The notes beneath the pieces are model-generated. The model was not told the origin of the DNA, ran no database searches, and was given only the letters and a program-made list of their open reading frames with translations. This document shows positions 910-59,409 of a DNA stretch of 64,000 bases, piece after piece; within the stretch, counting starts at the first letter, position 1, and each line of letters starts with the position of its first letter. The stretch spans positions 62,001-126,000 of the IMG/VR virus record IMGVR_UViG_3300030108_006260. One strand, 5' to 3'. The position numbers were made by a program, and so were the translations under genes.

Positions 910-1913
910 TCAAATCTGCACTGGGTAAGAGAAAGCATCCCATGGGATGTATAGATCATCACCAACCCTCAGGAAATCCTGGTTGGTGTACGTGGGCTGG
1001 TTTTGCCCTCGTGTAAATGAGGGAAGTTGTATTGAGCTGGGAAAAGTAGCAGTCGCTCCTTGACCTCCGTGCTGAGCCCAGAAGAGATCTTGAAGCACGC
1101 CCTTCGGGAACTTTGTAGCCGCGCCCCCCTTTGCCGCGACGATGGGGTAGCGACTCACGAGACCAAAGTCAGTCACGACGGAGAAGGGACCCACAGCGGA
1201 AGTGCCAGGCTGTGTGCCGCCCCCCGGCTCTCGGAAATAGTAGGGCTTGATGTTGTTGGTTCCTAGGAACGCTTCGGCGCCGCCGCCTTTGTCGTAGTAG
1301 CCGAGCCAATCGACCCCGCTCGACTTATCGCCGGTCCACGCTTCCATGTAGATGACAGGGTCCAAGTCTGTACCGCGCCACACGTTGAGTGGGAACATTC
1401 CGAAAATGCGGTGATTCATCGTGCTGGCTGCTGCGTAGGGCCGCGCACAGAACCCAAGAAGATGTGCTGCTGACTCGTAGCGAACCGCGCTGTCTGTCCC
1501 TTCGATATAGTCGCCTCCTGGCGCGTCGTCGCCGAAGAGAAAAAGCTGGTGTACGCCCGCCTGATCGAAGAAGTTTCCTTTCGTAGACCCGCCCGTCCCA
1601 ACGAGTTGCTGCTCTTCGGCGAGCGGAGGGCGTGTGTCTTCGGTCCCCGAAGGCACGGGAGGACTCGCAGCAAGGCGGCTGACGTATACCGCCATCGCCG
1701 CAACCGTGCTCCCTCGCTGGAACGTCAGAACGCGAATGCCGGGCGCAGGCTCCCTGATGCACTGGTAGGCGTTGTTATACNNNNNNNNNNAGATCCCGTA
1801 CCTCCTCCCGCGTAGTAGGCGGTCCACCCCAGGTTATCGATCGCGTGGCGAAAAAGGTGGTACGCGGCTTCTGCCGGGTTGCGCGCTAGTGCTGTGTTGA
1901 ACCGATAAGTCAT
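910..1913 (-). CDS. putative tail fibre/virion protein spanning an assembly gap
   Basis: ORF 1725..1913 (MTYRFNTALARN...GGGTGS) and ORF 910..1827 (...YNNAYQCIREPAPG...) are open on either side of the 10-N gap at 1781-1790. They are most simply one gene whose frame is shifted by a gap of unknown length. G/T/Y/W-rich, beta-type composition. Confidence 0.5.
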
Positions 1914-4671: not shown

Positions 4672-4762
4672 TGGCAGAGAGTGAGGGATTCGAACCCTCG
4701 GTACCCAAAATGGGTACACTCGCTTTCCAGGCGAGCCCTTTCGACCGCTCAGGCAACTCTCT
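4672..4762 (-). tRNA. tRNA-Ser(GGA)
   Basis: Acceptor AGAGAGT/ACTCTCT, anticodon arm CTCGC-CTGGAAA-GCGAG, long variable arm, GGTTCGAATCC T-arm, encoded CCA. Confidence 0.95.
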
Positions 4763-4767
4763 ATGTG

Positions 4768-5379
4768 TTATCCCTTTACAGAGATGTTACGCAACTGCTT
4801 AGAAATACTTCTAAGATTTTTAGTGGCAGTTGCGTGAAAAGATAAGGACGAGTAGACCTTACTCAACAGGTCAAATATCTCAGAAAAAGTAGAAAATACT
4901 TTACGCTTTGCCCGCAGGGACTTCTTGTAGTAGGGGTCAACAATCCTAAGGGGGTCCCTTCGACCTGGGTCTAGTGGCTCCTCCGGAATCATCCCACCAA
5001 CAAAGGATGACAAGCTATCTACTTTACTCTTAATACGATGAACTAGGTTTGCTGTCCTCTTGGAGGATCTGGCACTTACAGGAACGCGGGAAGCCGCAGC
5101 CTTCCTGACGTCATCCATGCAGGCATCCACCCAACTACGAGTATAAGGTCCCTTGGATAGGTGAAGGTCTACCTCTGCAAGACGACATAGCTGAATAGCC
5201 CTAAAAAGAGGGTCAACAAACTTAAGTGCAAAACCCTTTGAGTTCTGAGGGGTATCTAAAGACTTAGCTAGTGAGTCCATAACTGGACTAAGAGTAGAAC
5301 ACTGACCCTCTATTGTCATAATGAGGGCTTTTGCTCTAATGTGATCAGACTGAGATACAGAAGTAGGTGATTTTGTCAT
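4768..5379 (-). CDS. hypothetical protein
   Basis: ORF 4768..5448; likely start is ATG 5379 (MTKSPT), which avoids a long overlap with the upstream gene. Confidence 0.6.
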   Translation of the reverse strand: MTKSPTSVSQSDHIRAKALIMTIEGQCSTLSPVMDSLAKSLDTPQNSKGFALKFVDPLFRAIQLCRLAEVDLHLSKGPYTRSWVDACMDDVRKAAASRVPVSARSSKRTANLVHRIKSKVDSLSSFVGGMIPEEPLDPGRRDPLRIVDPYYKKSLRAKRKVFSTFSEIFDLLSKVYSSLSFHATATKNLRSISKQLRNISVKG

Positions 5380-5383
5380 GTAC

Positions 5384-5722
5384 CTATTTGTTTTTATTGG
5401 TAAAAGCCCGTTGAAACCGGGTAGTAAGATAAAATACGCAAAAAACACCTAAGGCCATAGCATTAGCAAGACCCGTAAGGAAAAGTAAGAAACCTAGAGG
5501 GTTACCGTTCCTTATAAGTGTCGATCCAGTACTAAGAAAGAAGGAAGTAGCAGCAGTAAATAGTAAAAGCTGCAACCCTACTATAAAAATGTAGTAGAAT
5601 TTATACATACACAAGTACCTTGTGACTAGATAGGGTGACCCTAGAGAGGTTTGAACTCTCATTTCAGCCGTGAGAGGGCTGCGTCCTAGCCGGTTAGACG
5701 ATAGGGCCAGTGGTAGCTCCAC
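5384..5722 (-). CDS. small membrane protein
   Basis: Two hydrophobic helices in the C-terminal half; true start uncertain. Confidence 0.45.
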   Translation of the reverse strand: MELPLALSSNRLGRSPLTAEMRVQTSLGSPYLVTRYLCMYKFYYIFIVGLQLLLFTAATSFFLSTGSTLIRNGNPLGFLLFLTGLANAMALGVFCVFYLTTRFQRAFTNKNK

Positions 5723-5789
5723 GGAGAATCGAACTCCGCTCTCCTGTGTGAAAAACAGGTATCCTAAACCGATAGACGATGGAGCCGTA

Positions 5790-6026
5790 TCAAGTACCAG
5801 TCACAACAGCGCGAGTACTTGCTACTTTAAAGAATACAGGAAGGTCTTCCCAGGTTTCGGGCATAATATCCTGATATTCTTCCCGCTCCTTCTTAGAAGA
5901 AGCATAAACTACGATGCCAAATGGAGGAGCACCCATAGGCGAACCATAGCCAAGAGTGTTACTTTGAAGAGCCTGCTGGAAGGTGGAGCGGAAGCGCTCT
6001 ACCTTATCAAGAGTTTGCTTATCCAT
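5790..6026 (-). CDS. hypothetical protein
   Basis: 78-aa ORF in co-directional gene order. Confidence 0.55.
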   Translation of the reverse strand: MDKQTLDKVERFRSTFQQALQSNTLGYGSPMGAPPFGIVVYASSKKEREEYQDIMPETWEDLPVFFKVASTRAVVTGT

Positions 6027-6065
6027 TTACTATAAAATCCTTGGGTTGTAACTAGTGTGAACTAG

Positions 6066-6148
6066 TGGTAGGGCCGGTGGGACTCGAACCCACACGCCGT
6101 AGCACAGGAACCTAAATCCTGCGAGTCTGCCAATTTCTCCACGGCCCC
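6066..6148 (-). tRNA. tRNA-Leu(TAG)
   Basis: Anticodon arm CAGGA-TTTAGGT-TCCTG, variable arm, GGTTCGAGTCC, CCA. Confidence 0.95.
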
Positions 6149-7277: not shown

Positions 7278-7880
7278 GTGAAGGTAATTAGAATAATAGT
7301 TTGGTCAGCGTTAGTTTCTTGCCTCTATTCTTGTGAGGTACCCCTTCCCACTCCGTACATTCACAGCCAGGAATACCTTCAAGTAGAGGGTTCTGAGTAT
7401 CTACAGCACCGACACCCAGAGGATTTTCCTCTGGGTGTCTTTATTTCACTACATATGCCCACTTCCTACGTTTTTTCTTCGCTAGAAGCAGTCGATAGGT
7501 GGAATGAAGCGGTAGGGTCAGATTTCCTTGACGCTCGTGTAGCGTTTATTCCACCATCAGATGGGAACGGTATTTACATTAGCTCAGAAGACCTATCGAG
7601 AGCCAGCTGGCATGTATACATGTATGGTCATGCCCAAAATGTCACAGGAAGAAGAGGGCACATTGAGCGTTCATTTATAGCTTTAAACACACGAATACCC
7701 AAGGAGATTCAGGCAACGGTAGTGATGCACGAAATAGGACACGCACTAGGATTGGCCCACGACTCTGAGCCGGGATCTATGATGTATCCAGCTATAAATC
7801 ACCTTCTATGTCAGTACTTAGAAATCAACGACGTAGAAGCAGTAAGGGGGCAACTTGAAGAAAGCGGCTATCACTTGTAG
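7278..7880 (+). CDS. matrixin-like (metzincin M10) zinc metalloprotease, probable lipoprotein
   Basis: HEIGHALGLAH zinc motif plus Met-turn SMMYP; N-terminal hydrophobic segment ending in LYSC. Confidence 0.88.
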   Translation: MKVIRIIVWSALVSCLYSCEVPLPTPYIHSQEYLQVEGSEYLQHRHPEDFPLGVFISLHMPTSYVFSSLEAVDRWNEAVGSDFLDARVAFIPPSDGNGIYISSEDLSRASWHVYMYGHAQNVTGRRGHIERSFIALNTRIPKEIQATVVMHEIGHALGLAHDSEPGSMMYPAINHLLCQYLEINDVEAVRGQLEESGYHL

Positions 7881-8469
7881 CTTACTCCTACTAGGATCGT
7901 GCCTAGCACCTAGGAGCAATGGAAACAGATACTGGAGCGAAGAAGACGCTCCCTTAGTGGTTGCCTATGATGACAACTTACCACAAGAGTACGTGGTAGG
8001 ACTCCATCAGGCCATACACCAGTGGAACATGGCCATAAACCGAAGATTACTGCGTATGGAATCAGTGGAACCGGAATCTCCCCTCGTGAACGGAGTAATA
8101 AGAGTAAGCCAAGGTACTATAGAAGTAGTCCATTTGAACCGATGGGGAAGAGTAAGAAGAATAGGCCAACACACTCCCGTTTTTGTCCACAATAGCGGAA
8201 GAATGATAAGGTCTCATATCATAATAGACACACGATATTCTGGGGGCTCCATGGCCAGAAAGATATCTGTACACGAAATAGGGCACGCCCTTGGTCTTAG
8301 ACATGACGAGTACGATCCTGGGTCTGTTATGTACCCTAGGATATCTGGTAATCAATTCATAAGAACTGATGACGTGGAGTACGTATTAGGGTATGTAGGA
8401 CAAAGTGTGCCTCAGTATAGAGAAATAAACTTTGCAACAAGAAACATCTTTAAAAGAGAGGAAGACTAG
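7855..8469 (+). CDS. matrixin-like zinc metalloprotease, probable lipoprotein
   Basis: HEIGHALGLRH plus SVMYP; MKKAAITCSLLLLGSC lipobox-like N-terminus. Confidence 0.88.
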   Translation: MKKAAITCSLLLLGSCLAPRSNGNRYWSEEDAPLVVAYDDNLPQEYVVGLHQAIHQWNMAINRRLLRMESVEPESPLVNGVIRVSQGTIEVVHLNRWGRVRRIGQHTPVFVHNSGRMIRSHIIIDTRYSGGSMARKISVHEIGHALGLRHDEYDPGSVMYPRISGNQFIRTDDVEYVLGYVGQSVPQYREINFATRNIFKREED

Positions 8470-8678: not shown

Positions 8679-8861
8679 TCAGTCTTCCTTGTCTTTGTCA
8701 TCCGGAGGTATAGACTCAAAGTGATACTTTGAGCAGTTTATAACCGGGGCGTCGGGGTACTTGTCCTTTTCAGGATGAGTACAGGTTATTGTTACTTTTC
8801 CTGTTACCTGAGACACATGGACTCTTTTGTTCTTACAAGTGGCGNNNNNNNNNNAAGCCAT
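8679..8861 (-). CDS. hypothetical Cys-containing protein (spans N gap 8845-8854)
   Basis: ORF track; 5' end unreliable because of the gap. Confidence 0.4.
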   Translation of the reverse strand: MAXXXXATCKNKRVHVSQVTGKVTITCTHPEKDKYPDAPVINCSKYHFESIPPDDKDKED

Positions 8862-11744: not shown

Positions 11745-11981
11745 ATAGTCAAAGTATGCTGCTCTCCAACCTCCGCACAACTAGATATTTGAAAAAAGGC
11801 CTTATTCTCAAAATCTAAACTAGATCCCGCATGCACCTGCCCTACAGATGACACACCCTGCCGGATGTGCAAGTAGGGAGCCCCTCATTATTGATGGGTG
11901 GGAATCGAACCCTGAGTCCAGGGTGCAGTGGTCAGTTCGGCTAAAAACCCTGCCAAGGGCAGAGCAGCATACTTTGACTAT
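11745..11981. ncRNA. unassigned structured element closed by a perfect 21-bp inverted repeat
   Basis: ATAGTCAAAGTATGCTGCTCT (11745-11765) is the exact reverse complement of 11961-11981; internal hairpins; no ORF. Confidence 0.55.
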
Positions 11982-11998: not shown

Positions 11999-12072
11999 TG
12001 GTACGGGATACTGGATTCGAACCAGTGTCTCAGCCTTGTAAGGGCCGTGCTAAACCACTCAGCTAATCCCGC
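11999..12072 (-). tRNA. tRNA-Val(TAC)
   Basis: Loop CTTACAA, T-arm GGTTCGAATCC, CCA. Confidence 0.95.
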
Positions 12073-12098
12073 TCTTGTATTTCTTCTTTTACAGAATA

Positions 12099-12173
12099 GG
12101 CGGAGGTAGAAGGGATCGAACCTACGACGACCCAGTTTCGAAGACTGGCGCTCTTCCTCTGAGCTATACCTCC
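12099..12173 (-). tRNA. tRNA-Arg(TCG)
   Basis: CCAGT-CTTCGAA-ACTGG; 3' end reads GCCT (CCA not fully encoded). Confidence 0.9.
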
Positions 12174-12176
12174 AGA

Positions 12177-12320
12177 GCTTGTTACTACGTGTTTGCGATT
12201 AGTTTAGAAGGTAGCTACTCCTTCTGCGTAAGCAACTCTACTCGCCGCTCTCGTTGAGATCCCGAGTTCCACTGTGCCTAACCATTGACTAGTATGATCG
12301 GCACGAGTGTAGTAACAAAC
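12177..12320 (-). ncRNA. unassigned multibranch RNA between the two tRNA-Arg genes
   Basis: 12-bp closing stem GTTTGTTACTAC/GTAGTAACAAGC enclosing hairpins GTGCC/GGCAC, TCTC/GAGA and AGAAGG/CCTTCT. Confidence 0.45.
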
Positions 12321-12396
12321 TGGCAGGGGTGGCAGGGATCGAACCTGCGCAAACCCAGTTTCGTAGACTGGTGCTCTTCCTCTGAGCTACACCCCT
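12321..12396 (-). tRNA. tRNA-Arg(ACG)
   Basis: CCAGT-CTACGAA-ACTGG, CCA. Confidence 0.95.
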
Positions 12397-12397
12397 G

Positions 12398-12468
12398 TGG
12401 AGTGGCGAGAAGGAATCAAACCTTCCTTAGCAGGGTTGCAACCTGCTTCGTTCTCAGAACATCACCAC
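12398..12468 (-). tRNA. tRNA-Cys(GCA), atypical D-arm and T-loop
   Basis: GCAGG-TTGCAAC-CCTGC, U73 discriminator, CCA; T-loop TTTGATT. Confidence 0.8.
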
Positions 12469-12469
12469 A

Positions 12470-12585
12470 AATCGCCACAAGTAGCACCTCCCGAGCAAGG
12501 TCCAATTCTACTTGTGACTTCCCGTCTCTCCGGGCTGTCACCTGCTTTTTCCATCCAACGGCCGCTGAGGGTTCGCGGGGATGCC
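12470..12585 (-). ncRNA. unassigned three-hairpin spacer RNA
   Basis: CATCC/GGATG + CCGC/GCGG; GTGAC-AGCCCGGAGAGACGGGAA-GTCAC; CAAGTAG/CTACTTG with inner ACCT/AGGT. Confidence 0.35.
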
Positions 12586-12660
12586 TGGAGCCCTAGCCCA
12601 GAATCGAACTGGGGTTTCATCTTTACCAAAGATGGGTACTAACCATTGTACTACTAGGGC
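12586..12660 (-). tRNA. tRNA-Thr(GGT)
   Basis: CATCT-TTGGTAA-AGATG, CCA. Confidence 0.95.
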
Positions 12661-12664
12661 TATT

Positions 12665-12750
12665 TGGCGGAAGGTTGAGGAGTCGAACCCCTACGCGTTA
12701 ACGCACCTCCGGGTTCAAACCGGATTGCCAACCACTTAGCGGAACCTTCC
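12665..12750 (-). tRNA. tRNA-Ser(TGA)
   Basis: TCCGG-TTTGAAC-CCGGA, long variable arm, CCA. Confidence 0.95.
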
Positions 12751-12751
12751 T

Positions 12752-12826
12752 TGGTGGGTCCGGAGGGACTTGAACCCTCAACCGTCAGGTTAAAAGCCTG
12801 CTGCACTACCATTGTGCTACGGACCC
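12752..12826 (-). tRNA. tRNA-Lys(TTT)
   Basis: Loop CTTTTAA, CCA. Confidence 0.95.
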
Positions 12827-12857
12827 GGTTGGGCCTTTTATAGTCGGCCAGGACTAG

Positions 12858-12930
12858 TGGAACCAGAGGGGATCGAACCCTCAGCCTCCTGCGTGCAAGG
12901 CAGGCGCTCTCCCAGTTGAGCTATGGCCCC
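12858..12930 (-). tRNA. tRNA-Ala(TGC)
   Basis: CCTGC-CTTGCAC-GCAGG, G3.U70, A73; followed by CTA rather than CCA. Confidence 0.93.
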
Positions 12931-12982
12931 TTTTTTAGAACGTATCACGTTTTCAATGAGAGTCAAGAAGATTGACTCAAAA

Positions 12983-13056
12983 TGGTACCGGGTGGGAGAA
13001 TCGAACTCCCGTATTGAGGACCAAAATCTCATGTCCTACCATTAGACGAACCCGGA
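12983..13056 (-). tRNA. tRNA-Gln(TTG)
   Basis: Loop TTTTGGT, CCA; 1:72 is a U.U mismatch. Confidence 0.92.
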
Positions 13057-13057
13057 A

Positions 13058-13144
13058 TGGCGGAAGGAACTGGAGTCGAACCAGATACCACGAGTGTACC
13101 AACGGCTTAGCAGGCCGCGCTAGTCCCAGACTAGGTTTCCTTCC
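13058..13144 (-). tRNA. tRNA-Ser(GCT)
   Basis: GCGGC-CTGCTAA-GCCGT, variable arm, CCA. Confidence 0.93.
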
Positions 13145-13147
13145 ATT

Positions 13148-13222
13148 TGGAGCGCCTGGAGGGAGTTGAACCCTCGCTTCTTGCTTGGCAAGCAAACGTG
13201 CCACCACCAACACTTCAGGCGC
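13148..13222 (-). tRNA. tRNA-Gly(GCC)
   Basis: Loop TTGCCAA, U73, CCA. Confidence 0.92.
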
Positions 13223-13226
13223 AAAA

Positions 13227-13304
13227 TGGTGGGAATGGGGAGACTCGAACTCCCTATCTCACGGGCCACAACCGTGTGCTTCGACCACTTTAGCTTCAGT
13301 CCCC
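13227..13304 (-). tRNA. tRNA-His(GTG)
   Basis: CACGG-TTGTGGC-CCGTG, extra 5' G, CCA. Confidence 0.93.
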
Positions 13305-13322
13305 ATAAAGACACAATAGTGC

Positions 13323-13409
13323 CGGTGGAGCGTGAAGGAATCGAACCTCATAGTACATAGACACTCGGTTTACAGCCGAGGGCAGGTCCCAGCCTGCTAT
13401 TCACGCTCC
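13323..13409 (-). tRNA. tRNA-Tyr(GTA)
   Basis: CTCGG-CTGTAAA-CCGAG, variable arm; 3' end reads CCG. Confidence 0.9.
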
Positions 13410-13955
13410 GGAATTCACGAAGTCCAAAATAACCTCGTTTAGGTAGGAAAGAACTCGTGGGTCTTTCTCGTCCCACTTATGCAGCATTAGAACGGAAAGG
13501 AGTTCATGGTTTCCCCAATTTTCAATGGCCTCAATGGCTGCTTCCCTTACAGCGGGATACTCTGATTTTAGTGCAGGTACTGCGAGTCTCTTGTGCCATG
13601 ACTCGATGCCTTCCATACGTCCCATCAAACGAAGGAAATCAGCAGCCACATGAATGTTTACGTCAGAGGGTAGTTCCTCCCAAAAAAGCAAGGTGGCACT
13701 CTTTAGGAAGTGAGACGAGAAAGTACCTGTAACGTGCAAACGAAGAGTATCCTCCATGCAATGACTTTTCCCATCGAATACAGGGTACTCGTGAAGGCTG
13801 GAAAGAAAAGAAGAAAAAGAAGAGTCTGTATCGTCTTCTTCATCGTGAAGTAGGCGATGAAGTTTTTCATTCATTAGTCGCTGCCTTACGAGAGCTTTCT
13901 TAGATAGGGATTTAATGGAATCCAGGGACAACTTAGTCTTTTCTTCTTCAGTCAT
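13401..13955 (-). CDS. HEAT-repeat-like helical protein embedded in tRNA cluster
   Basis: AVPALKSEYPAVREAAIEAIENWG...DEKDPRVLSYLNEVI matches a HEAT/PBS-lyase-like pattern. Confidence 0.6.
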   Translation of the reverse strand: MTEEEKTKLSLDSIKSLSKKALVRQRLMNEKLHRLLHDEEDDTDSSFSSFLSSLHEYPVFDGKSHCMEDTLRLHVTGTFSSHFLKSATLLFWEELPSDVNIHVAADFLRLMGRMEGIESWHKRLAVPALKSEYPAVREAAIEAIENWGNHELLSVLMLHKWDEKDPRVLSYLNEVILDFVNSGA

Positions 13956-14095
13956 ATGTATCCTGATGACAAAGGGCCGAGAGGACCCTCACGAGTAGTC
14001 TAGCGTCCATCCCCAATGGGGATCTTTGCGGACGCTTGCTTGCGCGTCGGCTTCAATCACATACATTAGTTCACCCTACTGTACTCTAGGTTACT

Positions 14096-14169
14096 TGGCG
14101 GAACGTACGGGGATCGAACCCGTCTCACCCGATAGACAGTCGGGCCGCATCCCAGATGCGCAACGCTCC
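14096..14169 (-). tRNA. tRNA-Asp(GTC)
   Basis: CCCGA-CTGTCTA-TCGGG, G73, CCA. Confidence 0.93.
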
Positions 14170-14170
14170 T

Positions 14171-14248
14171 TGGTGGACAGTTACGGAGTCGAACCGTAGT
14201 CCTAGTGAGGTCTTTCGATTTAACACTAGTCGAACCCTTCTACTGCCC
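14171..14248 (-). ncRNA. tmRNA tRNA-like domain (TLD) without mRNA-like domain
   Basis: GGGCAGT-AGAAGGGTTCGA-CTAGTG-(16-nt loop)-CACTAG-GAC-TACGG-TTCGACT-CCGTA-ACTGTCC-A-CCA: G3.U70, A73, stemless D-loop ending GG-N-TTCGAC, GAC linker. Same layout as the 5' and 3' ends of bacterial tmRNA. Confidence 0.8.
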
Positions 14249-14250
14249 GT

Positions 14251-14326
14251 TGGTACTGCTGGAAAGAATCGAACTTTCGTTTCCTGTGTATCAGACAGGT
14301 GCCCTAAACCATTGGACGACAGCAGC
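14251..14326 (-). tRNA. tRNA-Ile(GAT)
   Basis: CCTGT-CTGATAC-ACAGG, CCA. Confidence 0.95.
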
Positions 14327-14331
14327 AAAAT

Positions 14332-14943
14332 CTATTTAAGTAGCCTGTATTTGTGACGAATCAAGGACACTGCAACATTGTAGTCATGAGCCTTGTCTTT
14401 GAGCAGAGCATGGGATACCTTTTCCGCAAAAGGAGCATCCTTTACAAAGGACCAGAAAGCGTATGGCCAAACTCCTCTAACATCCAGTGAGCAGCAAAAA
14501 GACAAAAGCTTCGCGTCTAGAGAGGAAAGGGAATCTCTAGGAAAAATATAGTGTGATAGAAGAGAGAATGATGCGTTCTTTGACCACTCATCTGCCTTCT
14601 CAGACCCTTCCACGACGTAATATGTATAGTTATAACTTGAGGATTTTGTTTCGTATGGAGGCTCTCCAACCACAGAGGTACACCCGGATAGAGTTCCTTT
14701 TAAACGATCATGAAATATAAATAGATAGTAGTCTTTTCCTGGGGAGAAAGAGATAGGAAAGGGGTCTACTCCCCTTACAAGACCATCTTCCAACATCGAA
14801 GGTAGAAACCTAACACTGTCATGTCGACCGCAAGTTCCCCGAAGGGTTTCTCCGGTTTGAATTACAGAAGATCCTCGTACTACAGGAAAATCCTCAGTAG
14901 GATAACTTCCTTCAAATCCTACTACTGTTGGTTGATCACTCAT
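14332..14943 (-). CDS. hypothetical protein
   Basis: 203-aa ORF in co-directional order. Confidence 0.65.
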   Translation of the reverse strand: MSDQPTVVGFEGSYPTEDFPVVRGSSVIQTGETLRGTCGRHDSVRFLPSMLEDGLVRGVDPFPISFSPGKDYYLFIFHDRLKGTLSGCTSVVGEPPYETKSSSYNYTYYVVEGSEKADEWSKNASFSLLSHYIFPRDSLSSLDAKLLSFCCSLDVRGVWPYAFWSFVKDAPFAEKVSHALLKDKAHDYNVAVSLIRHKYRLLK

Positions 14944-14955
14944 ATCTCTGAAGAT

Positions 14956-15627
14956 TTACAGTAGGCGACACAGCTTAGGTGCGTAATCATAGTTACTCTC
15001 CACTAAAAGTGCAGTAAGTTCTGACAAGTATGTATCTTTCTCTTCTTGTGACTCCAGGTTAGTCACAAAGTAAGTCACATCTGTAGACTGTGTGTGAATA
15101 AGTAGGTCGTAAGAGTAGGTATTGAAAAAAACTCGTGTGACCTTCTTCTCATTAGGGGTAGCTAGCGGTACCTTCTCTGCGAGAGGGTAACCATTAGAAA
15201 TTTCTTCCATATGAGTGTATTCTTCTGAGTACACCGGGTAGAACTTGAAGTAGTTAGGAGGGTAAGACCTTGCATATCTTGATGTAGGAAACCACTCGTT
15301 CTTCATGAACTCAATAAGGTCTACTGCGTCACTTGCGTAATATACTACTTTATTTACCCTATCTATGACTACAAAAAATCGATCGTATTCACCTACTACC
15401 GTGGGTGATTTAAGTGGTAGGAACCTGTCCTCAAAGTATACTACGAAGGGTAGGTATAGGTACTTCCTATAACAACCTAGAACGGTATCCTTTGCTTTTT
15501 CAAAGTAAGTTTTCATTTTACCTATGGTACTTTCATAGAAAGTAATGCTTGGTACTCCCGGCTGGTTATGCTCCAGCTTGACGTCTTTATAAGAAACGCA
15601 TCCTAACTGATTAGATGACGGGAGCAA
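14956..15627 (-). CDS. hypothetical protein (Tyr/Phe-rich)
   Basis: 223-aa ORF. Confidence 0.65.
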   Translation of the reverse strand: MLPSSNQLGCVSYKDVKLEHNQPGVPSITFYESTIGKMKTYFEKAKDTVLGCYRKYLYLPFVVYFEDRFLPLKSPTVVGEYDRFFVVIDRVNKVVYYASDAVDLIEFMKNEWFPTSRYARSYPPNYFKFYPVYSEEYTHMEEISNGYPLAEKVPLATPNEKKVTRVFFNTYSYDLLIHTQSTDVTYFVTNLESQEEKDTYLSELTALLVESNYDYAPKLCRLL

Positions 15628-15738
15628 AATTTACTTCTTAAGTCCCCTAATATGAGGTCTCCGTAAATGAGTACGGACTGAGCTACGGGAGCGTGGAAAG
15701 GTTCTAGCACGAGAACCTTTCGTAAGTCAAGAGAAAAG

Positions 15739-16725
15739 TTAGAAAGAATCCAACTGGGACTTGAAGAAGTCGCGTCCCAAGGTCATTACTTTCTTATTTA
15801 CATCCTTGTAAGTCAATCCACTCTCTTCTAAATCTAGAGTACATTCTTTTTGAATGTCGTTTGCGAGCCACTTTAGAAAGGTTCCTGTGGAGGTGACATC
15901 CAGAGGATGCCCTTCTTCTTTTAGAAAGAAGATTCCCTGCGCAAGGCGTGCCTTACTGACTGCGTACTTTACAAAGGCATCAACCGATTCCAGTTTTTCC
16001 GGAGACATCTGTGGACCCTTCTTCCGGGGTGCCACCATCTTGTGCTTTTCCCCTTTCGACTTGAAGGGCAGCACTGGATTTCCAAAGTGCTCCCACATAG
16101 GAGTCCATACAACTCCTTCTCCGGTTCCTCTGATCCCAAAGTTTTCGCCCCAGGGGCAACAATCTTCCACATTGGCAGTAATAGACATTACTTCTTCCAT
16201 GAAGGAAGATCTGCTTTCGCTACTGCTGAAGTCGACACGGAGTGTGTACGAAGGAACAGCTAGGATAGAGTGGATCAATCCAGGAGAGGTCACGATTGCG
16301 TCAAGTGCTGGAACAGGTACGAGAGGCTGTCCCTTCTCTACCTCTGCATGAACAGAGAAAAGAACCCACTGCCGCTCGGGTAGACTGTTTACAGCTACCC
16401 CTTTCTGGATTCCAGGGCCTACCCACTCCCCAAACAGAACAATGTCAAACTCTGGGTCGATGGAAAGTTCCCGTCGAACAGAATCCTCGATCTTACGAAT
16501 CGACTTTTCGTGCTTTGATACAAAGGTAGCAAAACCAAAAGAATCGTTTCGTTCCTTTGTACGAGACTGAGGGATTAGTTCGCTAGGCGTACATCGTACT
16601 CCCGCGTTCGTACCATGAAGCTTCACTGTTCCACGGTACGTAACAACACTACGTGGTAGCTGACCAGACTTGTCTAGGTACCTAGCTACCTGATAAAAAG
16701 AATCGATTGATGGAAACTTGTGCAT
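15739..16725 (-). CDS. ATP-dependent RNA ligase (Rnl2-like nucleotidyltransferase)
   Basis: Motif I VKLHGTN, III LFGEW, IIIa VLF, IV GEGVVW, V FKSK; AGGAG SD upstream. Confidence 0.88.
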   Translation of the reverse strand: MHKFPSIDSFYQVARYLDKSGQLPRSVVTYRGTVKLHGTNAGVRCTPSELIPQSRTKERNDSFGFATFVSKHEKSIRKIEDSVRRELSIDPEFDIVLFGEWVGPGIQKGVAVNSLPERQWVLFSVHAEVEKGQPLVPVPALDAIVTSPGLIHSILAVPSYTLRVDFSSSESRSSFMEEVMSITANVEDCCPWGENFGIRGTGEGVVWTPMWEHFGNPVLPFKSKGEKHKMVAPRKKGPQMSPEKLESVDAFVKYAVSKARLAQGIFFLKEEGHPLDVTSTGTFLKWLANDIQKECTLDLEESGLTYKDVNKKVMTLGRDFFKSQLDSF

Positions 16726-16758
16726 TTATTTTTTTCTCCTGAAGGAACAGTGTCCCTC

Positions 16759-16846
16759 GTTGCTCTCTACCATAAGAAGGGTTGTATCTTCCCTCAACCC
16801 AGAGGCTAAGCACCTTGTTGCTCTCTACCATGAGAAGGGTTGAAAC
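16759..16846. CRISPR. Cas-less mini CRISPR-like unit (2 repeats, 1 spacer)
   Basis: GTTGCTCTCTACCAT(A/G)AGAAGGGTTG at 16759 and 16817 (25/26 identical). The second copy ends GTTGAAAC, the first is degenerate (GTTGTATC). 28-nt spacer 16789-16816; weak internal hairpin. Confidence 0.6.
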
Positions 16847-16872
16847 AAGTATGTAGAGGCAGTTTATTATAG

Positions 16873-16947
16873 TGGTGCCCCGAACAGGAATCGAACCTGT
16901 GACCACCGGGCTTCAACCGGCCGCTCTACCAACTGAGCTATCGGGGC
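16873..16947 (-). tRNA. tRNA-Phe(GAA)
   Basis: Loop TTGAAGC, CCA. Confidence 0.95.
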
Positions 16948-16948
16948 G

Positions 16949-17023
16949 TGGCAGGCCACTAAGGACTTGAACCCTAACTAACGAATTTGGAATTCGTTGT
17001 GCTACCAATTACACTAGTGACCT
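16949..17023 (-). tRNA. tRNA-Trp(CCA)
   Basis: ACGAA-TTCCAAA-TTCGT, CCA. Confidence 0.95.
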
Positions 17024-17024
17024 A

Positions 17025-17100
17025 TGGCGGGAGATGCAGGGTTTGAACCTGCGACAATTGAGTTAACAGCTCACCGCTCTACCAACTGAGCTAATCTCCC
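17025..17100 (-). tRNA. tRNA-Asn(GTT) copy 1
   Basis: Loop CTGTTAA, G73, CCA. Confidence 0.93.
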
Positions 17101-17102
17101 TT

Positions 17103-17179
17103 TGGCGGGCCCTGCAAGAATCGAACTTGCCTTATTCTGGTTAACAGCCAGGCGCACTCACCAGAGGTGCTAAGGACCC
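17103..17179 (-). tRNA. tRNA-Asn(GTT) copy 2 (divergent body)
   Basis: Loop CTGTTAA, G73, CCA; acceptor and D-arm differ from copy 1. Confidence 0.9.
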
Positions 17180-17230
17180 ATTGTGCAGGGAAGCCACTCC
17201 CTGCGGACAAATACGTATTCAGTTTTCAAG

Positions 17231-17305
17231 TGGATCGGGAGGCTGGGTTTGAACCAGCGACATACGGAATCAGAACCCGTCGTTCTACCACTGAACTACT
17301 CCCGA
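17231..17305 (-). tRNA. tRNA-Gln(CTG)
   Basis: ACGGG-TTCTGAT-TCCGT, U1-A72, CCA. Confidence 0.9.
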
Positions 17306-17306
17306 A

Positions 17307-17382
17307 TGGTGGATCTGTGGGGAATCGAACCCCAAATCGTCCGGTTAAGAGCCGGCTGCTTTACCATTGAAGCTACAGATCC
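17307..17382 (-). tRNA. tRNA-Lys(CTT)
   Basis: Loop CTCTTAA, CCA. Confidence 0.95.
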
Positions 17383-17402
17383 AGTACGAGCCTAAGATAT
17401 AA

Positions 17403-17441
17403 AGAACAAAAAAACCGCCGAGGCTAGTGCCTGGGCGGTTC
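17403..17441 (-). terminator. intrinsic terminator of putative attenuator
   Basis: AACCGCCCAGGC-ACTA-GCCTCGGCGGTT (11 of 12 bp paired) followed by TTTTTGTTCT on the minus strand, about 20 nt before tRNA-Lys. Confidence 0.85.
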
Positions 17442-17460
17442 AAAGTAACACTTTGTCGTT

Positions 17461-17595
17461 TTACGACAGGGTGGAACCGCACACACCCGTTGAAATATTG
17501 GTAGACTGCACATCAAAAGAAAACGCAGCAATACTGTCCCGGCGATACGAGCGCCAAGCAGAGCTAAGTTTTATATTTTGATGACGTGTCTTCAT
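17461..17595 (-). CDS. 44-aa leader peptide (uORF) of putative attenuator
   Basis: ATG 17595 to TAA 17461: MKTRHQNIKLSSAWRSYRRDSIAAFSFDVQSTNISTGVCGSTLS; below the 60-aa track cutoff. Confidence 0.65.
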   Translation of the reverse strand: MKTRHQNIKLSSAWRSYRRDSIAAFSFDVQSTNISTGVCGSTLS

Positions 17596-17604
17596 GACTT
17601 AGAG

Positions 17605-17633
17605 AGTATGAGGTATGAGTAGATACATGTCAA
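17605..17633 (-). promoter_or_regulatory. sigma70-type promoter TTGACA-17-CATACT
   Basis: -35 at 17628-17633, -10 at 17605-17610; predicted +1 near 17599-17598, only 3-4 nt before the uORF ATG. Confidence 0.8.
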
Positions 17634-17674
17634 GAAAAAAGTTACTAAGTTGTAGAGAAAGTTAAACTACAACC

Positions 17675-18496
17675 CTAAAGTGCCCAAGGACCTTCTTCTG
17701 ACGTGAACCCGGCCGAGTTCCAATGACCGCCTCCTCCTAGAGATCTTGCGAGAGAAGACACATCAAAGTTAGACCCCTCTTCATCGGAACGCAAGGAGTA
17801 AACGAACAATCCGTTGTTTATCTGCCTCCAGCCTACACTGAACAGGCTGTCTTTAGCCAAGGAGTTTAGTAGCTCTGACACAGCATAGAAAGGTGCGTTC
17901 ACAACTGGGATGTCTGAGTATCCCTTGAAGGTCGAGTTAATAGCCTGTAGCTTCATCTGTTCAACGTAGGAACCCTTGGCACGGAGTATAGCCTCCCCTT
18001 CACTACAAACAACTCCTGGATTTGTAGAAAGGCGATGGTCCAAAAGGTTCCAGTTATCGAAGCTAAAGGTATAGCTGGTGACTACGGCATTGATCTCGAC
18101 CGACTTCGGCACAGAAAACCTCCACAAATCCCTATCCTCCACACAGTCAACCAAAAGAGGTCTCTTAGTGTTCGGATGGAAAAAGTCCCAAGACATTCCG
18201 GCACCCGACCTATCCATGTCGAAAAAGCAACCGGGCATACCTTCAAGGTCGTCTTTTGCAGTTAGGTGGTGGTCCAGCACTGTCAAACTTCGTGCCATGT
18301 CCGAAAGGAGCATAAGGTCGTCTCTTTTATAAGAGAAGTCAAGGATATAAACGTCCTTGTCTGTGACATCCGGAATTTCTAGGTCAGAGTAGTTAACGGA
18401 TTTGTAGTCTGCTCGGTCACCAAACTTCTTGTAAGCAGCCCACGCAGAGGTGAACCCGTCGGGACAATCCCCATGGTATAAGACTAAAGTATCCAT
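17675..18496 (-). CDS. DHH/DHHA1 phosphoesterase
   Basis: LYHGDCPDGF, ILDFS, LDHH, GGGGH..SAGF motifs. Confidence 0.9.
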   Translation of the reverse strand: MDTLVLYHGDCPDGFTSAWAAYKKFGDRADYKSVNYSDLEIPDVTDKDVYILDFSYKRDDLMLLSDMARSLTVLDHHLTAKDDLEGMPGCFFDMDRSGAGMSWDFFHPNTKRPLLVDCVEDRDLWRFSVPKSVEINAVVTSYTFSFDNWNLLDHRLSTNPGVVCSEGEAILRAKGSYVEQMKLQAINSTFKGYSDIPVVNAPFYAVSELLNSLAKDSLFSVGWRQINNGLFVYSLRSDEEGSNFDVSSLARSLGGGGHWNSAGFTSEEGPWAL

Positions 18497-23806: not shown

Positions 23807-23923
23807 GACTACTGACTCCTTTTCGAAGGAAAGGGCAGTATTCTTAATTTATTAAGTTTATATTCTACCGTAGAATTTAATAGAAAAAAGGCCATGTTAT
23901 AATATAACATAACCTTTATTAGA

Positions 23924-23998
23924 TGGTCGGAGCGACAGGGATCGAACCTGCGATTTCTGGTTCCCAAAACCAGCGACTTACCACTAGCCTACACTCCG
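23924..23998 (-). tRNA. tRNA-Pro(TGG)
   Basis: CTGGT-TTTGGGA-ACCAG, C1-G72, A73, CCA. Confidence 0.95.
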
Positions 23999-24074
23999 TC
24001 TGTTTAGGACCCGAGCGTAGACTCGGATCCTATCTGGGATCTATTGGTGTATGATTTTTACTCATTACTCCTAT

Positions 24075-24108
24075 AGTATAACACACTACTAAAGACATGC
24101 AAGTACTT
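24075..24108 (-). promoter_or_regulatory. sigma70-like promoter TTGCAT-16-TG-T-TATACT preceded by AAGTAC
   Basis: -35 at 24097-24102, extended -10 at 24075-24080; upstream of tRNA-Pro. Confidence 0.55.
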
Positions 24109-58501: not shown

Positions 58502-58576
58502 TGGAGCTTCGTATCGGAATCGAACCGATTTCTCCGGGTTACAAATCCGGTGCATCGCCAGCAATGCTTACAAAGC
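58502..58576 (-). tRNA. tRNA-Thr(TGT)
   Basis: Loop TTTGTAA, GGTTCGATTCC, CCA. Confidence 0.92.
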
Positions 58577-58747
58577 AGTAGTGTACTAAATTCCGTAGGA
58601 CCTAGTACCAGAAATAATAGATCTATCTATGTACGCCTTTTTGTTACCTAGGATAACTACGGACCTCTTTTTAGAAGTGATCCGGGAAGGAGAGTACAGA
58701 GACATTAACATAAGGTGCTGAAAAGGTTTACGCATGAGTATCAGGAA

Positions 58748-58783
58748 ATCCTAGCACAAGGTAGCCCTTGAAGTCAAGTACTT
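58748..58783 (-). promoter_or_regulatory. sigma70-like promoter TTGACT-18-TG-C-TAGGAT preceded by AAGTAC
   Basis: -35 at 58772-58777, -10 at 58748-58753; upstream of tRNA-Thr. Confidence 0.5.
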
Positions 58784-59409
58784 TAATCGTGATACAGGCT
58801 TCTAAGAAGGGCCCTATCGTGGTCAGAGACCCTAAGCCTAGAAAAGTACCCTGAAGATGAAGTCGTAGGATACATGGCTGATGCCTCATAGGGATCATGG
58901 TCTAGACCGAGAGCGTGGTACATCTCGTGAGTAAGAACTTTGTCTAACATTTCCAGTGTACCCGTATTCCAAGTAGTAACCATGCACCTTAAAGATCCTC
59001 CAGAGTCACGGTAGTGACTTGCCCCTCCGTTAGAATCCGTCATCCAGGTACCAGACTCAGATGCACCTGCTATCTCTACAGTTATTGCAGGGTCTAGTGC
59101 GTCTGAATAAATCAATGCCTGAAATCCAAGTCGGTTGTTAATCAGATCAATAACAGAACGAGTAGCTTCCTCCGGATTTGCAGGAGGATAGGGGTTGCTC
59201 GTATCTGCGTACACTGTGAGGGGGAACTGATCCCTATCCCATGTAACAGGGGAGCAGTCCTTCGTGTAATCTAGTGATCCCGTAGGTGTTTCACAAGCAG
59301 TAAGAAGACCCGGCTCTTCATGAGTGGATATACCTACCACAAGTAAAATTACGGCAGCTAAAACAACAGCAGCAGCCAGAGCATACATTATTTTATTTCT
59401 AGTAGTCAT
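58783..59409 (-). CDS. membrane-anchored matrixin-like metalloprotease
   Basis: N-terminal TM; HEMYHALGLDH plus Met-turn SAMYP. Confidence 0.85.
   Translation of the reverse strand: MTTRNKIMYALAAAVVLAAVILLVVGISTHEEPGLLTACETPTGSLDYTKDCSPVTWDRDQFPLTVYADTSNPYPPANPEEATRSVIDLINNRLGFQALIYSDALDPAITVEIAGASESGTWMTDSNGGASHYRDSGGSLRCMVTTWNTGTLEMLDKVLTHEMYHALGLDHDPYEASAMYPTTSSSGYFSRLRVSDHDRALLRSLYHD

Follow-up and report, generated by a model that had tools for sequence, protein, structure and literature searches.

A 44-codon open reading frame (ORF) directly ahead of a large tRNA gene region in a marine virus has codons that match the anticodons of the tRNAs encoded next to it. The ORF lies between a promoter of a type found before tRNA genes and a strong intrinsic terminator, and we tentatively read the leader as a translation-coupled transcription attenuator of the tRNA operon which responds to tRNA supply, an interpretation that is plausible and to which we give somewhat less than an even chance. 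Phages with dozens of tRNA genes are common. To our knowledge, almost nothing has been established about the control of tRNA genes in such phages, and we know of no cellular or viral tRNA operon under leader-peptide control. If the proposed reading is true, attenuation would be extended from one amino acid to the whole decoding capacity of the cell, and the loss of tRNAs in the course of infection would be tied directly, and in a way open to testing, to the replacement tRNAs of the phage. If the match is due to chance, the presence of a strong terminator between a tRNA promoter and its tRNAs still needs explanation.

Layout of the leader and its tRNA genes

The window, by which we mean the whole stretch of 64,000 nucleotides that was analyzed, belongs to a marine virus record of 240,443 bp, classed as 'provirus' and as 62% complete in IMG/VR. 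The record coordinates equal the first 240 kb of a 340,737-bp JGI metagenome contig, about 100 kb of which was trimmed off in the IMG/VR record. Four 10-N scaffold gaps are found in the record, two of them inside the window (1780-1790 and 8844-8854). Across the 240 kb, ARAGORN called 36 tRNA genes and missed one more, all of them on the minus strand. The ORF sits in a 292-nt gap between a DHH phosphoesterase gene (17675-18496) and tRNA-Lys(CUU) (17382), surrounded by the following features:

17605-17647, minus strand: sigma-70-type promoter with a T-rich upstream tract, -35 TTGACA (17633-17628), 17-nt spacer and -10 CATACT (17610-17605)
17461-17595, minus strand: 44-codon ATG ORF with stop codon TAA at 17463-17461
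17511-17583, minus strand: long imperfect hairpin inside the ORF, codons 5-28, present in the minimum free energy (MFE) and centroid folds (inverted repeat I3)
17474-17487, minus strand: candidate 5' strand of an antiterminator, codons 37-41 (inverted repeat I5)
17408-17441, minus strand: intrinsic terminator with a G+C-rich stem of 12 bp, one mismatch, a 4-nt loop and a run of 7 T (inverted repeat I1)
16873-17382, minus strand: first tRNA cluster, Lys(CUU), Gln(CUG), two Asn(GUU), Trp(CCA) and Phe(GAA)
11999-16872, minus strand: rest of the adjacent tRNA region, 16 more tRNA genes from an Ile(UAU)-like gene to Val(UAC)
4672-6148, minus strand: distal tRNAs, Leu(UAG), Glu(UUC), Glu(CUC) and Ser(GGA)

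The promoter is the best sigma-70 match within 20 kb (10/12). Two paralogues share its T-rich upstream tract and its strand, one at window position 15742, 8 nt ahead of a tRNA-like sequence, and the other at genome position 46849, outside the window and 36 nt ahead of tRNA-Asn(AUU). Because the tract recurs before tRNA or tRNA-like genes, the leader promoter is placed in a three-member tRNA-associated family. The initial annotation had cautioned that other promoters exist within the region: besides the paralogue at about 15742, the distal tRNAs (6148-4672) have a promoter-like site of their own at about 6232-6190, and they are for this reason probably a separate transcription unit. Within that unit, tRNA-Leu lies at 6066-6148, tRNA-Glu(UUC) at 5711-5786, tRNA-Glu(CUC) at 5633-5709 and tRNA-Ser at 4672-4762, with both Glu genes found by ARAGORN and Rfam. 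The adjacent region (17382-11999) holds 21 distinct anticodons; its larger part, 11999-16872, also contains an RNA ligase gene, three other ORFs and the internal paralogous promoter. In addition to the embedded RNA ligase, the tRNA region has a peptide deformylase nearby.

The terminator has arms at 17440-17429 and 17424-17413, and its stem-loop (17441-17412) has a folding energy of -20.3 kcal/mol and is retained in the MFE structure of the full leader. The first bases of the T-run (17414-17408) close the stem. A simple consensus scan missed this terminator because of the internal mismatch. Only about 25 nt separate the T-run from tRNA-Lys(CUU), which leaves no room for a separate promoter. 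With a terminator in front of them and no promoter after it, the six tRNAs of the first cluster, among them the only Trp and Phe tRNAs of the record, would depend on read-through and, judging from the sequence, could be produced in no other way.

The ORF extends from the predicted transcription start to 20 nt short of the terminator stem. In dinucleotide shuffles of the leader, a comparable layout (an ATG at most 12-15 nt from the -10 hexamer, at least 40 codons opened and a stop before the terminator) had a probability of P = 0.011-0.013. The ATG is found 9 nt past the -10 hexamer, and the mRNA is therefore predicted to be leaderless or to have a 5' UTR of 3-5 nt, so that leaderless initiation at this codon is possible. 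There is no Shine-Dalgarno (SD) sequence at the ORF, the SD duplex energy of +2.7 kcal/mol being worse than that of 99% of long ORFs. The SD core is present at just 30% of this phage's gene starts, compared to 13% of random positions, and its absence is therefore weak evidence. Codon usage cannot separate gene from spurious ORF here, as 13% of gene chunks score lower than the leader ORF (0.121) and 13% of spurious ORFs score higher. Each of the three sense frames of the leader stretch contains ORFs of 35-45 codons, and gene callers reported no ORF at the leader position on any of ten contigs. A search of the 44-amino-acid peptide against 1.84 billion representative proteins found no homologue and no small-protein family, yielding only three weak matches, to long proteins of 170-591 amino acids.

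The leader RNA of about 190 nt (about 17600 to 17404) has an MFE of -64 kcal/mol (z = -3.7), and small hairpins accompany the long one in this fold. The candidate antiterminator strand at 17487-17474 pairs with 17441-17426, which comprises the 5' arm and loop of the terminator. This pairing exceeds chance by a narrow margin only, with an energy of -10.3 kcal/mol, compared to -6.2 +/- 2.3 in shuffles (P = 0.05). In a transcript cut before the terminator 3' arm the 5' arm is paired to 17487-17474 with a probability of 0.93-1.0, the antiterminator itself forming with a probability of about 0.99. At equilibrium, the terminator form is favored by about 10 kcal/mol. A ribosome footprint was then masked codon by codon in the fold of the leader truncated before the terminator 3' arm. 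The 5' arm is sequestered (P 0.94-1.0) in the absence of a mask and for A-site positions from codon 1 to codon 34, which predicts read-through; with the mask at codons 36-43 the arm is free (P 0.10-0.20), which predicts termination. The leader has no protector hairpin. The codons for Gly (GCC anticodon) and Cys (GCA anticodon) are confined to codons 37-40, where a stall should favor termination. The initial annotation had foreseen this difficulty, noting that stalls at the final Gly and Cys codons would still cover the antiterminator. Rfam (E <= 1, positions 4000-25000) returned only tRNAs and noise, with nothing in 17400-17650 and no match to any known riboswitch.

Codons of the leader and anticodons of the adjacent tRNAs

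After the initial Met, the peptide contains 17 amino-acid types and lacks E, P and an internal M. Ser occurs nine times, Thr and Arg four times each, Ile and Ala three times each, Lys, Gln, Asn, Leu, Asp, Phe, Val and Gly twice each, and His, Trp, Tyr and Cys once each. This agrees with the initial annotation, which had described a 44-mer of 17 types without E and P (the ORF at 17595-17461, minus strand) in which W, C, H and Y each appear once. That annotation had further held that these are exactly the isotypes of the downstream tRNAs (17382-4672), that tRNA-Pro lies upstream of the promoter and that the window has no tRNA-Glu. The position of tRNA-Pro was correct, with tRNA-Pro(UGG) at 23924-23998. 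The other two claims fail: two tRNA-Glu genes at 5633-5786 on the minus strand lie downstream, inside the very range that had been considered, and the downstream set within the window amounts to 18 types, Glu included. The initial annotation had itself named a downstream tRNA-Glu as a refuting result, and this is the result obtained.

A comparison with random ORFs, which had been proposed as a check, gave a divided answer. Seventeen types are ordinary, as at least that many are found in 43 residues in 30% of the record's ORFs, 36% of ORFs of 40-50 amino acids and 46% of composition-matched random sequences. An amino-acid set within one type of the corrected 18-type set is rarer (P = 1.0-1.6%), and the match of codons to anticodons reaches a joint P of at most 1e-3. 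For the latter, we counted the distinct downstream anticodons for which the ORF offers one or more cognate codons, as well as those of its 43 codons that are unreadable by any downstream tRNA, both under strict wobble and under expanded U34 wobble. For the 25 anticodons of 17382-4672, 23 are covered, with only the two Glu anticodons lacking a codon; five codons are unreadable under strict wobble and two (ACA and ACG) under expanded wobble. The nulls lead one to expect 16-19 covered and 9-14 unreadable. The probability of the coverage is 0.0005-0.02 across null models and that of the unreadable count 1e-4 to 0.015, giving a joint P of about 1e-3 when the nulls are empirical and of 1.5e-5 to 3e-4 under independent, identically distributed (iid) codons.

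With the distal tRNAs having their own promoter-like site, the 21 anticodons of 17382-11999 are the more natural unit. For this set, which was chosen after the Glu genes were seen, coverage is complete (21/21; P 6e-5 to 5e-4, iid codons). Full coverage is found in the leader ORF alone among 1,146 ORFs of the 240-kb record and in 0 of 1,960 gene chunks, and codons 2-34 by themselves cover 19/21. The five other frames of the same DNA cover 14-19 anticodons and have 7-20 unreadable codons. Remote tRNAs of the same phage are covered in only 3-4 of 10 cases (near versus remote, Fisher 5e-4 to 3e-3), and when all tRNAs of the record are counted the match disappears (P 0.17-0.27). Beyond the window, the record encodes Arg(CCU, UCU), Asn(AUU), Gly(UCC), two Met and three Leu tRNAs on the same strand.

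Part of these statistics is not independent, because the hypothesis itself arose from the amino-acid match. When synonymous codons were resampled for an unchanged peptide, the joint P was 0.005-0.02, and this portion of the evidence does not depend on the earlier observation. Codon diversity was ruled out as the cause of the match: the ORF has 32 distinct codons (P = 0.115), and among 132 equally diverse ORFs only the leader ORF shows full coverage. Enrichment in codons of the six first-cluster tRNAs was also ruled out (7/43, compared to 14% in genes). A frame-specific and location-specific association between the codons of the ORF and the adjacent tRNAs therefore remains.

The initial annotation had listed ATA and ACA as codons that the downstream anticodons do not read. 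This holds for ACA, which together with ACG is decoded only by tRNA-Thr(UGU), 41 kb upstream of the leader ORF. It may not hold for ATA, for which the tRNA-Ile(UAU)-like gene is a possible reader. The suggestion made there of a pan-tRNA 'checklist' sensor survives in part: the identity of the two sets is false owing to Glu, while the coverage of all 21 anticodons, its restriction to one frame and a leader anatomy that fits attenuation speak for it.

Two further tRNA units of the window also contain short ORFs:

23887-24102, minus strand: self-contained tRNA-Pro unit with promoter TTGCAT, 17 nt, TATACT and an 11-codon ORF (24065-24030)
58502-58790, minus strand: tRNA-Thr(UGU) unit with a second-family promoter (AAGTACTTGAC-type) and a 49-codon ATG ORF (58735-58586)

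In the former, a 9-bp hairpin starts from the stop codon and is followed 8 nt later by tRNA-Pro and then by a 14-bp terminator; its ORF has two Pro codons, and two in 10 have a probability of about 0.08-0.10. In the latter, the ORF stops 10 nt before tRNA-Thr(UGU) and has no ACA or ACG codon. The ORFs of these units thus give one weak match (Pro) and one miss (Thr). The AAGTACTTGAC-type promoter family also precedes tRNA-Pro and tRNA-Leu(UAG).

Relatives, known systems and competing explanations

Ten ocean-metagenome contigs carry the leader and all are 100% identical, so there are no substitutions for an analysis of microdiversity. A near-identity DNA search of the phage collection gave no match to the leader. 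A sludge metagenome run from 2022 yielded, at low depth, a 268-nt contig identical to window positions 17438-17705; all other sources are marine. No RNA run carries the leader stretch, and its coverage was zero in two metatranscriptomes from phage-carrying samples. In the next relatives, the flanking DHH protein is only 55% identical and neither blastn nor a genome search recovered a homologue of the leader; a synteny search of IMG/VR through the RNA ligase gene found no relative. In LR745208.1, the closest of the deposited phages (DHH protein 45% identical), the DHH gene is not followed by a tRNA cluster. Four relatives have an element of about 140 nt directly before tRNA-Asn:

L013, 6985-7123
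L015, 7048-7186
L016, 7634-7775
L017, 8528-8668

This element combines a promoter-like site and an ATG-led ORF of 32 codons with a terminal hairpin directly at the stop codon, and tRNA-Asn comes next. A 13-bp stem is invariant, the terminal hairpin shows compensatory changes, and the element lacks both a T-run and a match in Rfam; its substitutions are not concentrated at third codon positions. It looks conserved as RNA and may represent a kind of leader RNA, so far undescribed, that belongs to tRNA clusters of phages. The initial annotation had proposed testing whether leader composition tracks tRNA content across related phages. The 21 kb downstream of the element contain 20 tRNA anticodons, with which the 32-codon ORF shows no match (P 0.03-0.56, mostly >0.2), and no leader-position ORF stands out in the relatives. 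The codon match is thus not replicated in the relatives, whose element is analogous to the leader and is not shown to be homologous to it. Exact-pattern scans for the element in IMG/VR and metagenome contigs gave zero matches.

Ribosome-mediated attenuators of enterobacterial operons include trpL, hisL, pheL, leuL, thrL and ilvL, and the pyrBI leader peptide has 44 amino acids (see also PMC1183508; PMC3082878). By analogy, it is the leader-peptide attenuators of these operons that our leader appears to resemble most among known systems. As in trp-type attenuators, there is a promoter-proximal short ORF with an intrinsic terminator before the regulated genes, a candidate antiterminator pairing overlaps the 3' end of the ORF so that ribosome position would decide between the two forms, and the codons of the ORF relate to the product of the operon. 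Unlike in trp-type attenuators, there is no run of codons for a single amino acid and no tandem regulatory codons; instead, the ORF samples about 21 tRNA species, with one to a few codons for each. The leader also differs in its missing SD sequence and near-leaderless start, and in that the regulated genes are phage tRNAs rather than biosynthetic enzymes. The protector (1:2) pairing of trp has no counterpart either, and untranslated transcripts are therefore predicted to read through. T-box leaders (RF00230) are likewise attenuators that report tRNA status via competing terminator and antiterminator structures. However, a T-box senses a single uncharged tRNA by direct binding and without an ORF, and the genes it controls are synthetase or amino-acid genes; T-box identity was ruled out by the lack of an RF00230 match at E <= 1 in 4000-25000. 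The tRNA gene region of phage T4 encodes small stable RNAs, species 1 and 2, that are processed from a tRNA precursor. Our leader is similar in being a small structured RNA adjoining a phage tRNA cluster and differs in that a terminator of its own precedes the tRNAs and would block them. A full-text literature search found no described leader-peptide attenuator of a tRNA operon.

The mechanism that we propose would begin with the tRNA-family promoter starting an RNA of about 190 nt that ends at the strong terminator ahead of tRNA-Lys(CUU), with translation of the 44-codon ORF determining how much read-through occurs. Until the terminator 3' arm has been transcribed, the 5' arm would pair with the strand at 17487-17474. 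A ribosome traversing codons 36-43 would cover the antiterminator strand and allow the terminator to form, while a ribosome stalled in codons 2-34 would leave it free and let the polymerase continue into the tRNA genes. Since the ORF has a codon for every tRNA of the adjacent region and few others, slow decoding by any of them would raise tRNA transcription, and the feedback would act on tRNA supply rather than on a single amino acid. It is with more reserve still that we suggest that this one ORF samples about 20 tRNA species and that shortage or loss of any of them switches on the phage tRNAs together with the embedded RNA ligase. Such a loss could stem from rare host tRNAs, from host tRNA breakdown or from an anticodon-nuclease defence.

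The anatomy of the leader, with its promoter, spanning ORF, antiterminator and terminator, is consistent with ribosome-mediated attenuation in the folding models, and chance alone would need three partly independent coincidences, in the layout (about 0.01), in the antiterminator (0.05) and in the codon match (at most 1e-3). Against this weigh the origin of the hypothesis in the data themselves, our own choices in the analysis, the lack of a translation signal, the unfavorable position of the Gly and Cys codons and the want of replication or conservation. The chief competing explanation is a leader that is never translated and that simply lowers transcription into the tRNA operon, as a non-coding attenuator or leaky terminator with a coincidental ORF and codon match; alternatively, an antitermination factor of the phage, a protein that binds RNA, a tRNA or some small molecule, rather than a ribosome, could override the terminator. 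The strong terminator, alternative pairing and stable fold would all be accounted for, as would the near-leaderless start without SD, the 35-45-codon ORFs in every sense frame and the disappearance of the match once all tRNAs of the record are counted, and the leaders of the relatives, with their invariant long hairpin and covarying terminal hairpin, look conserved as RNA. This explanation nevertheless requires a coincidence of about 1e-3 or rarer in the one ORF of the leader and in that frame only, in addition to an ORF layout of P about 0.01, and no known riboswitch or T-box matches the leader; we consider it somewhat less likely than translation-coupled attenuation.

Possession of its own promoter, stable fold and terminator fits a small RNA as well as it fits an attenuator. 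The transcript may be a structured RNA of about 190 nt with a function of its own, or a terminated leader acting in trans, with the tRNAs fed by residual read-through. The promoter, the structured RNA (z = -3.7) and the terminator, which looks efficient, would then make up a unit complete in itself. Its promoter type is the one that this phage uses for stable RNAs, and in other phages small stable RNAs are encoded next to tRNA genes. There is also a precedent for a second role of a terminated leader in trans in rnTrpL, which is reported to be an attenuator-derived small RNA of Sinorhizobium from a classical Trp attenuator (PMC6614838). With such an RNA, however, six tRNAs, the sole Trp and Phe tRNAs among them, would have no promoter of their own; it matches no Rfam family and has no conservation to show a structured RNA, and the frame-specific codon match goes unexplained, which makes it an improbable account. 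That the ORF is an ordinary gene for a 44-amino-acid microprotein, with its own promoter and terminator and unrelated to tRNA control, is very improbable, and a small share of the probability falls to none of the explanations named here. The ORF does span the unit from promoter to terminator and its codon usage falls between that of genes and spurious ORFs, but it has no homologue among the 1.84 billion proteins searched, was left uncalled on all ten contigs and lacks an SD.

Unusual tRNA genes in the window and in relatives

The gene that ARAGORN did not call is a tRNA-Tyr(GUA) at about 13323-13408 (minus strand) with a long variable arm, recognized via the Rfam tRNA-Sec model (40 bits), inspection and folding. 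The tRNA-Ile(UAU)-like gene at 15550-15625 (minus strand) is unusual in having a clean cloverleaf and an encoded CCA together with a non-canonical T-loop, and the Rfam tRNA model gives no match to it. A 67-nt stretch upstream of it (15550-15692 for the two together) begins with the same acceptor 5' strand and a D-arm-like sequence, and the promoter paralogue before the gene overlaps the stop codon of the RNA ligase. Just past tRNA-Val, window positions 11885-11960 (minus strand) contain a T-arm-like GGTTCGATTCC motif; no tool calls a tRNA here, and the stretch may be a decayed tRNA gene. It is followed by a second-family promoter-like site.

In one of the four relatives (L016, about 7776-7907), the tRNA-Asn is broken inside the anticodon loop by unrelated sequence that reaches the contig end, which could be an intron or an insertion. 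The tRNA region of a 207-kb relative contig (L019/L020) encodes, according to precomputed Pfam labels, an EF-Tu homologue, a peptidyl-tRNA hydrolase (PTH2), an RNA ligase and Cpn10, and it includes two ARAGORN calls with 4-base anticodons.
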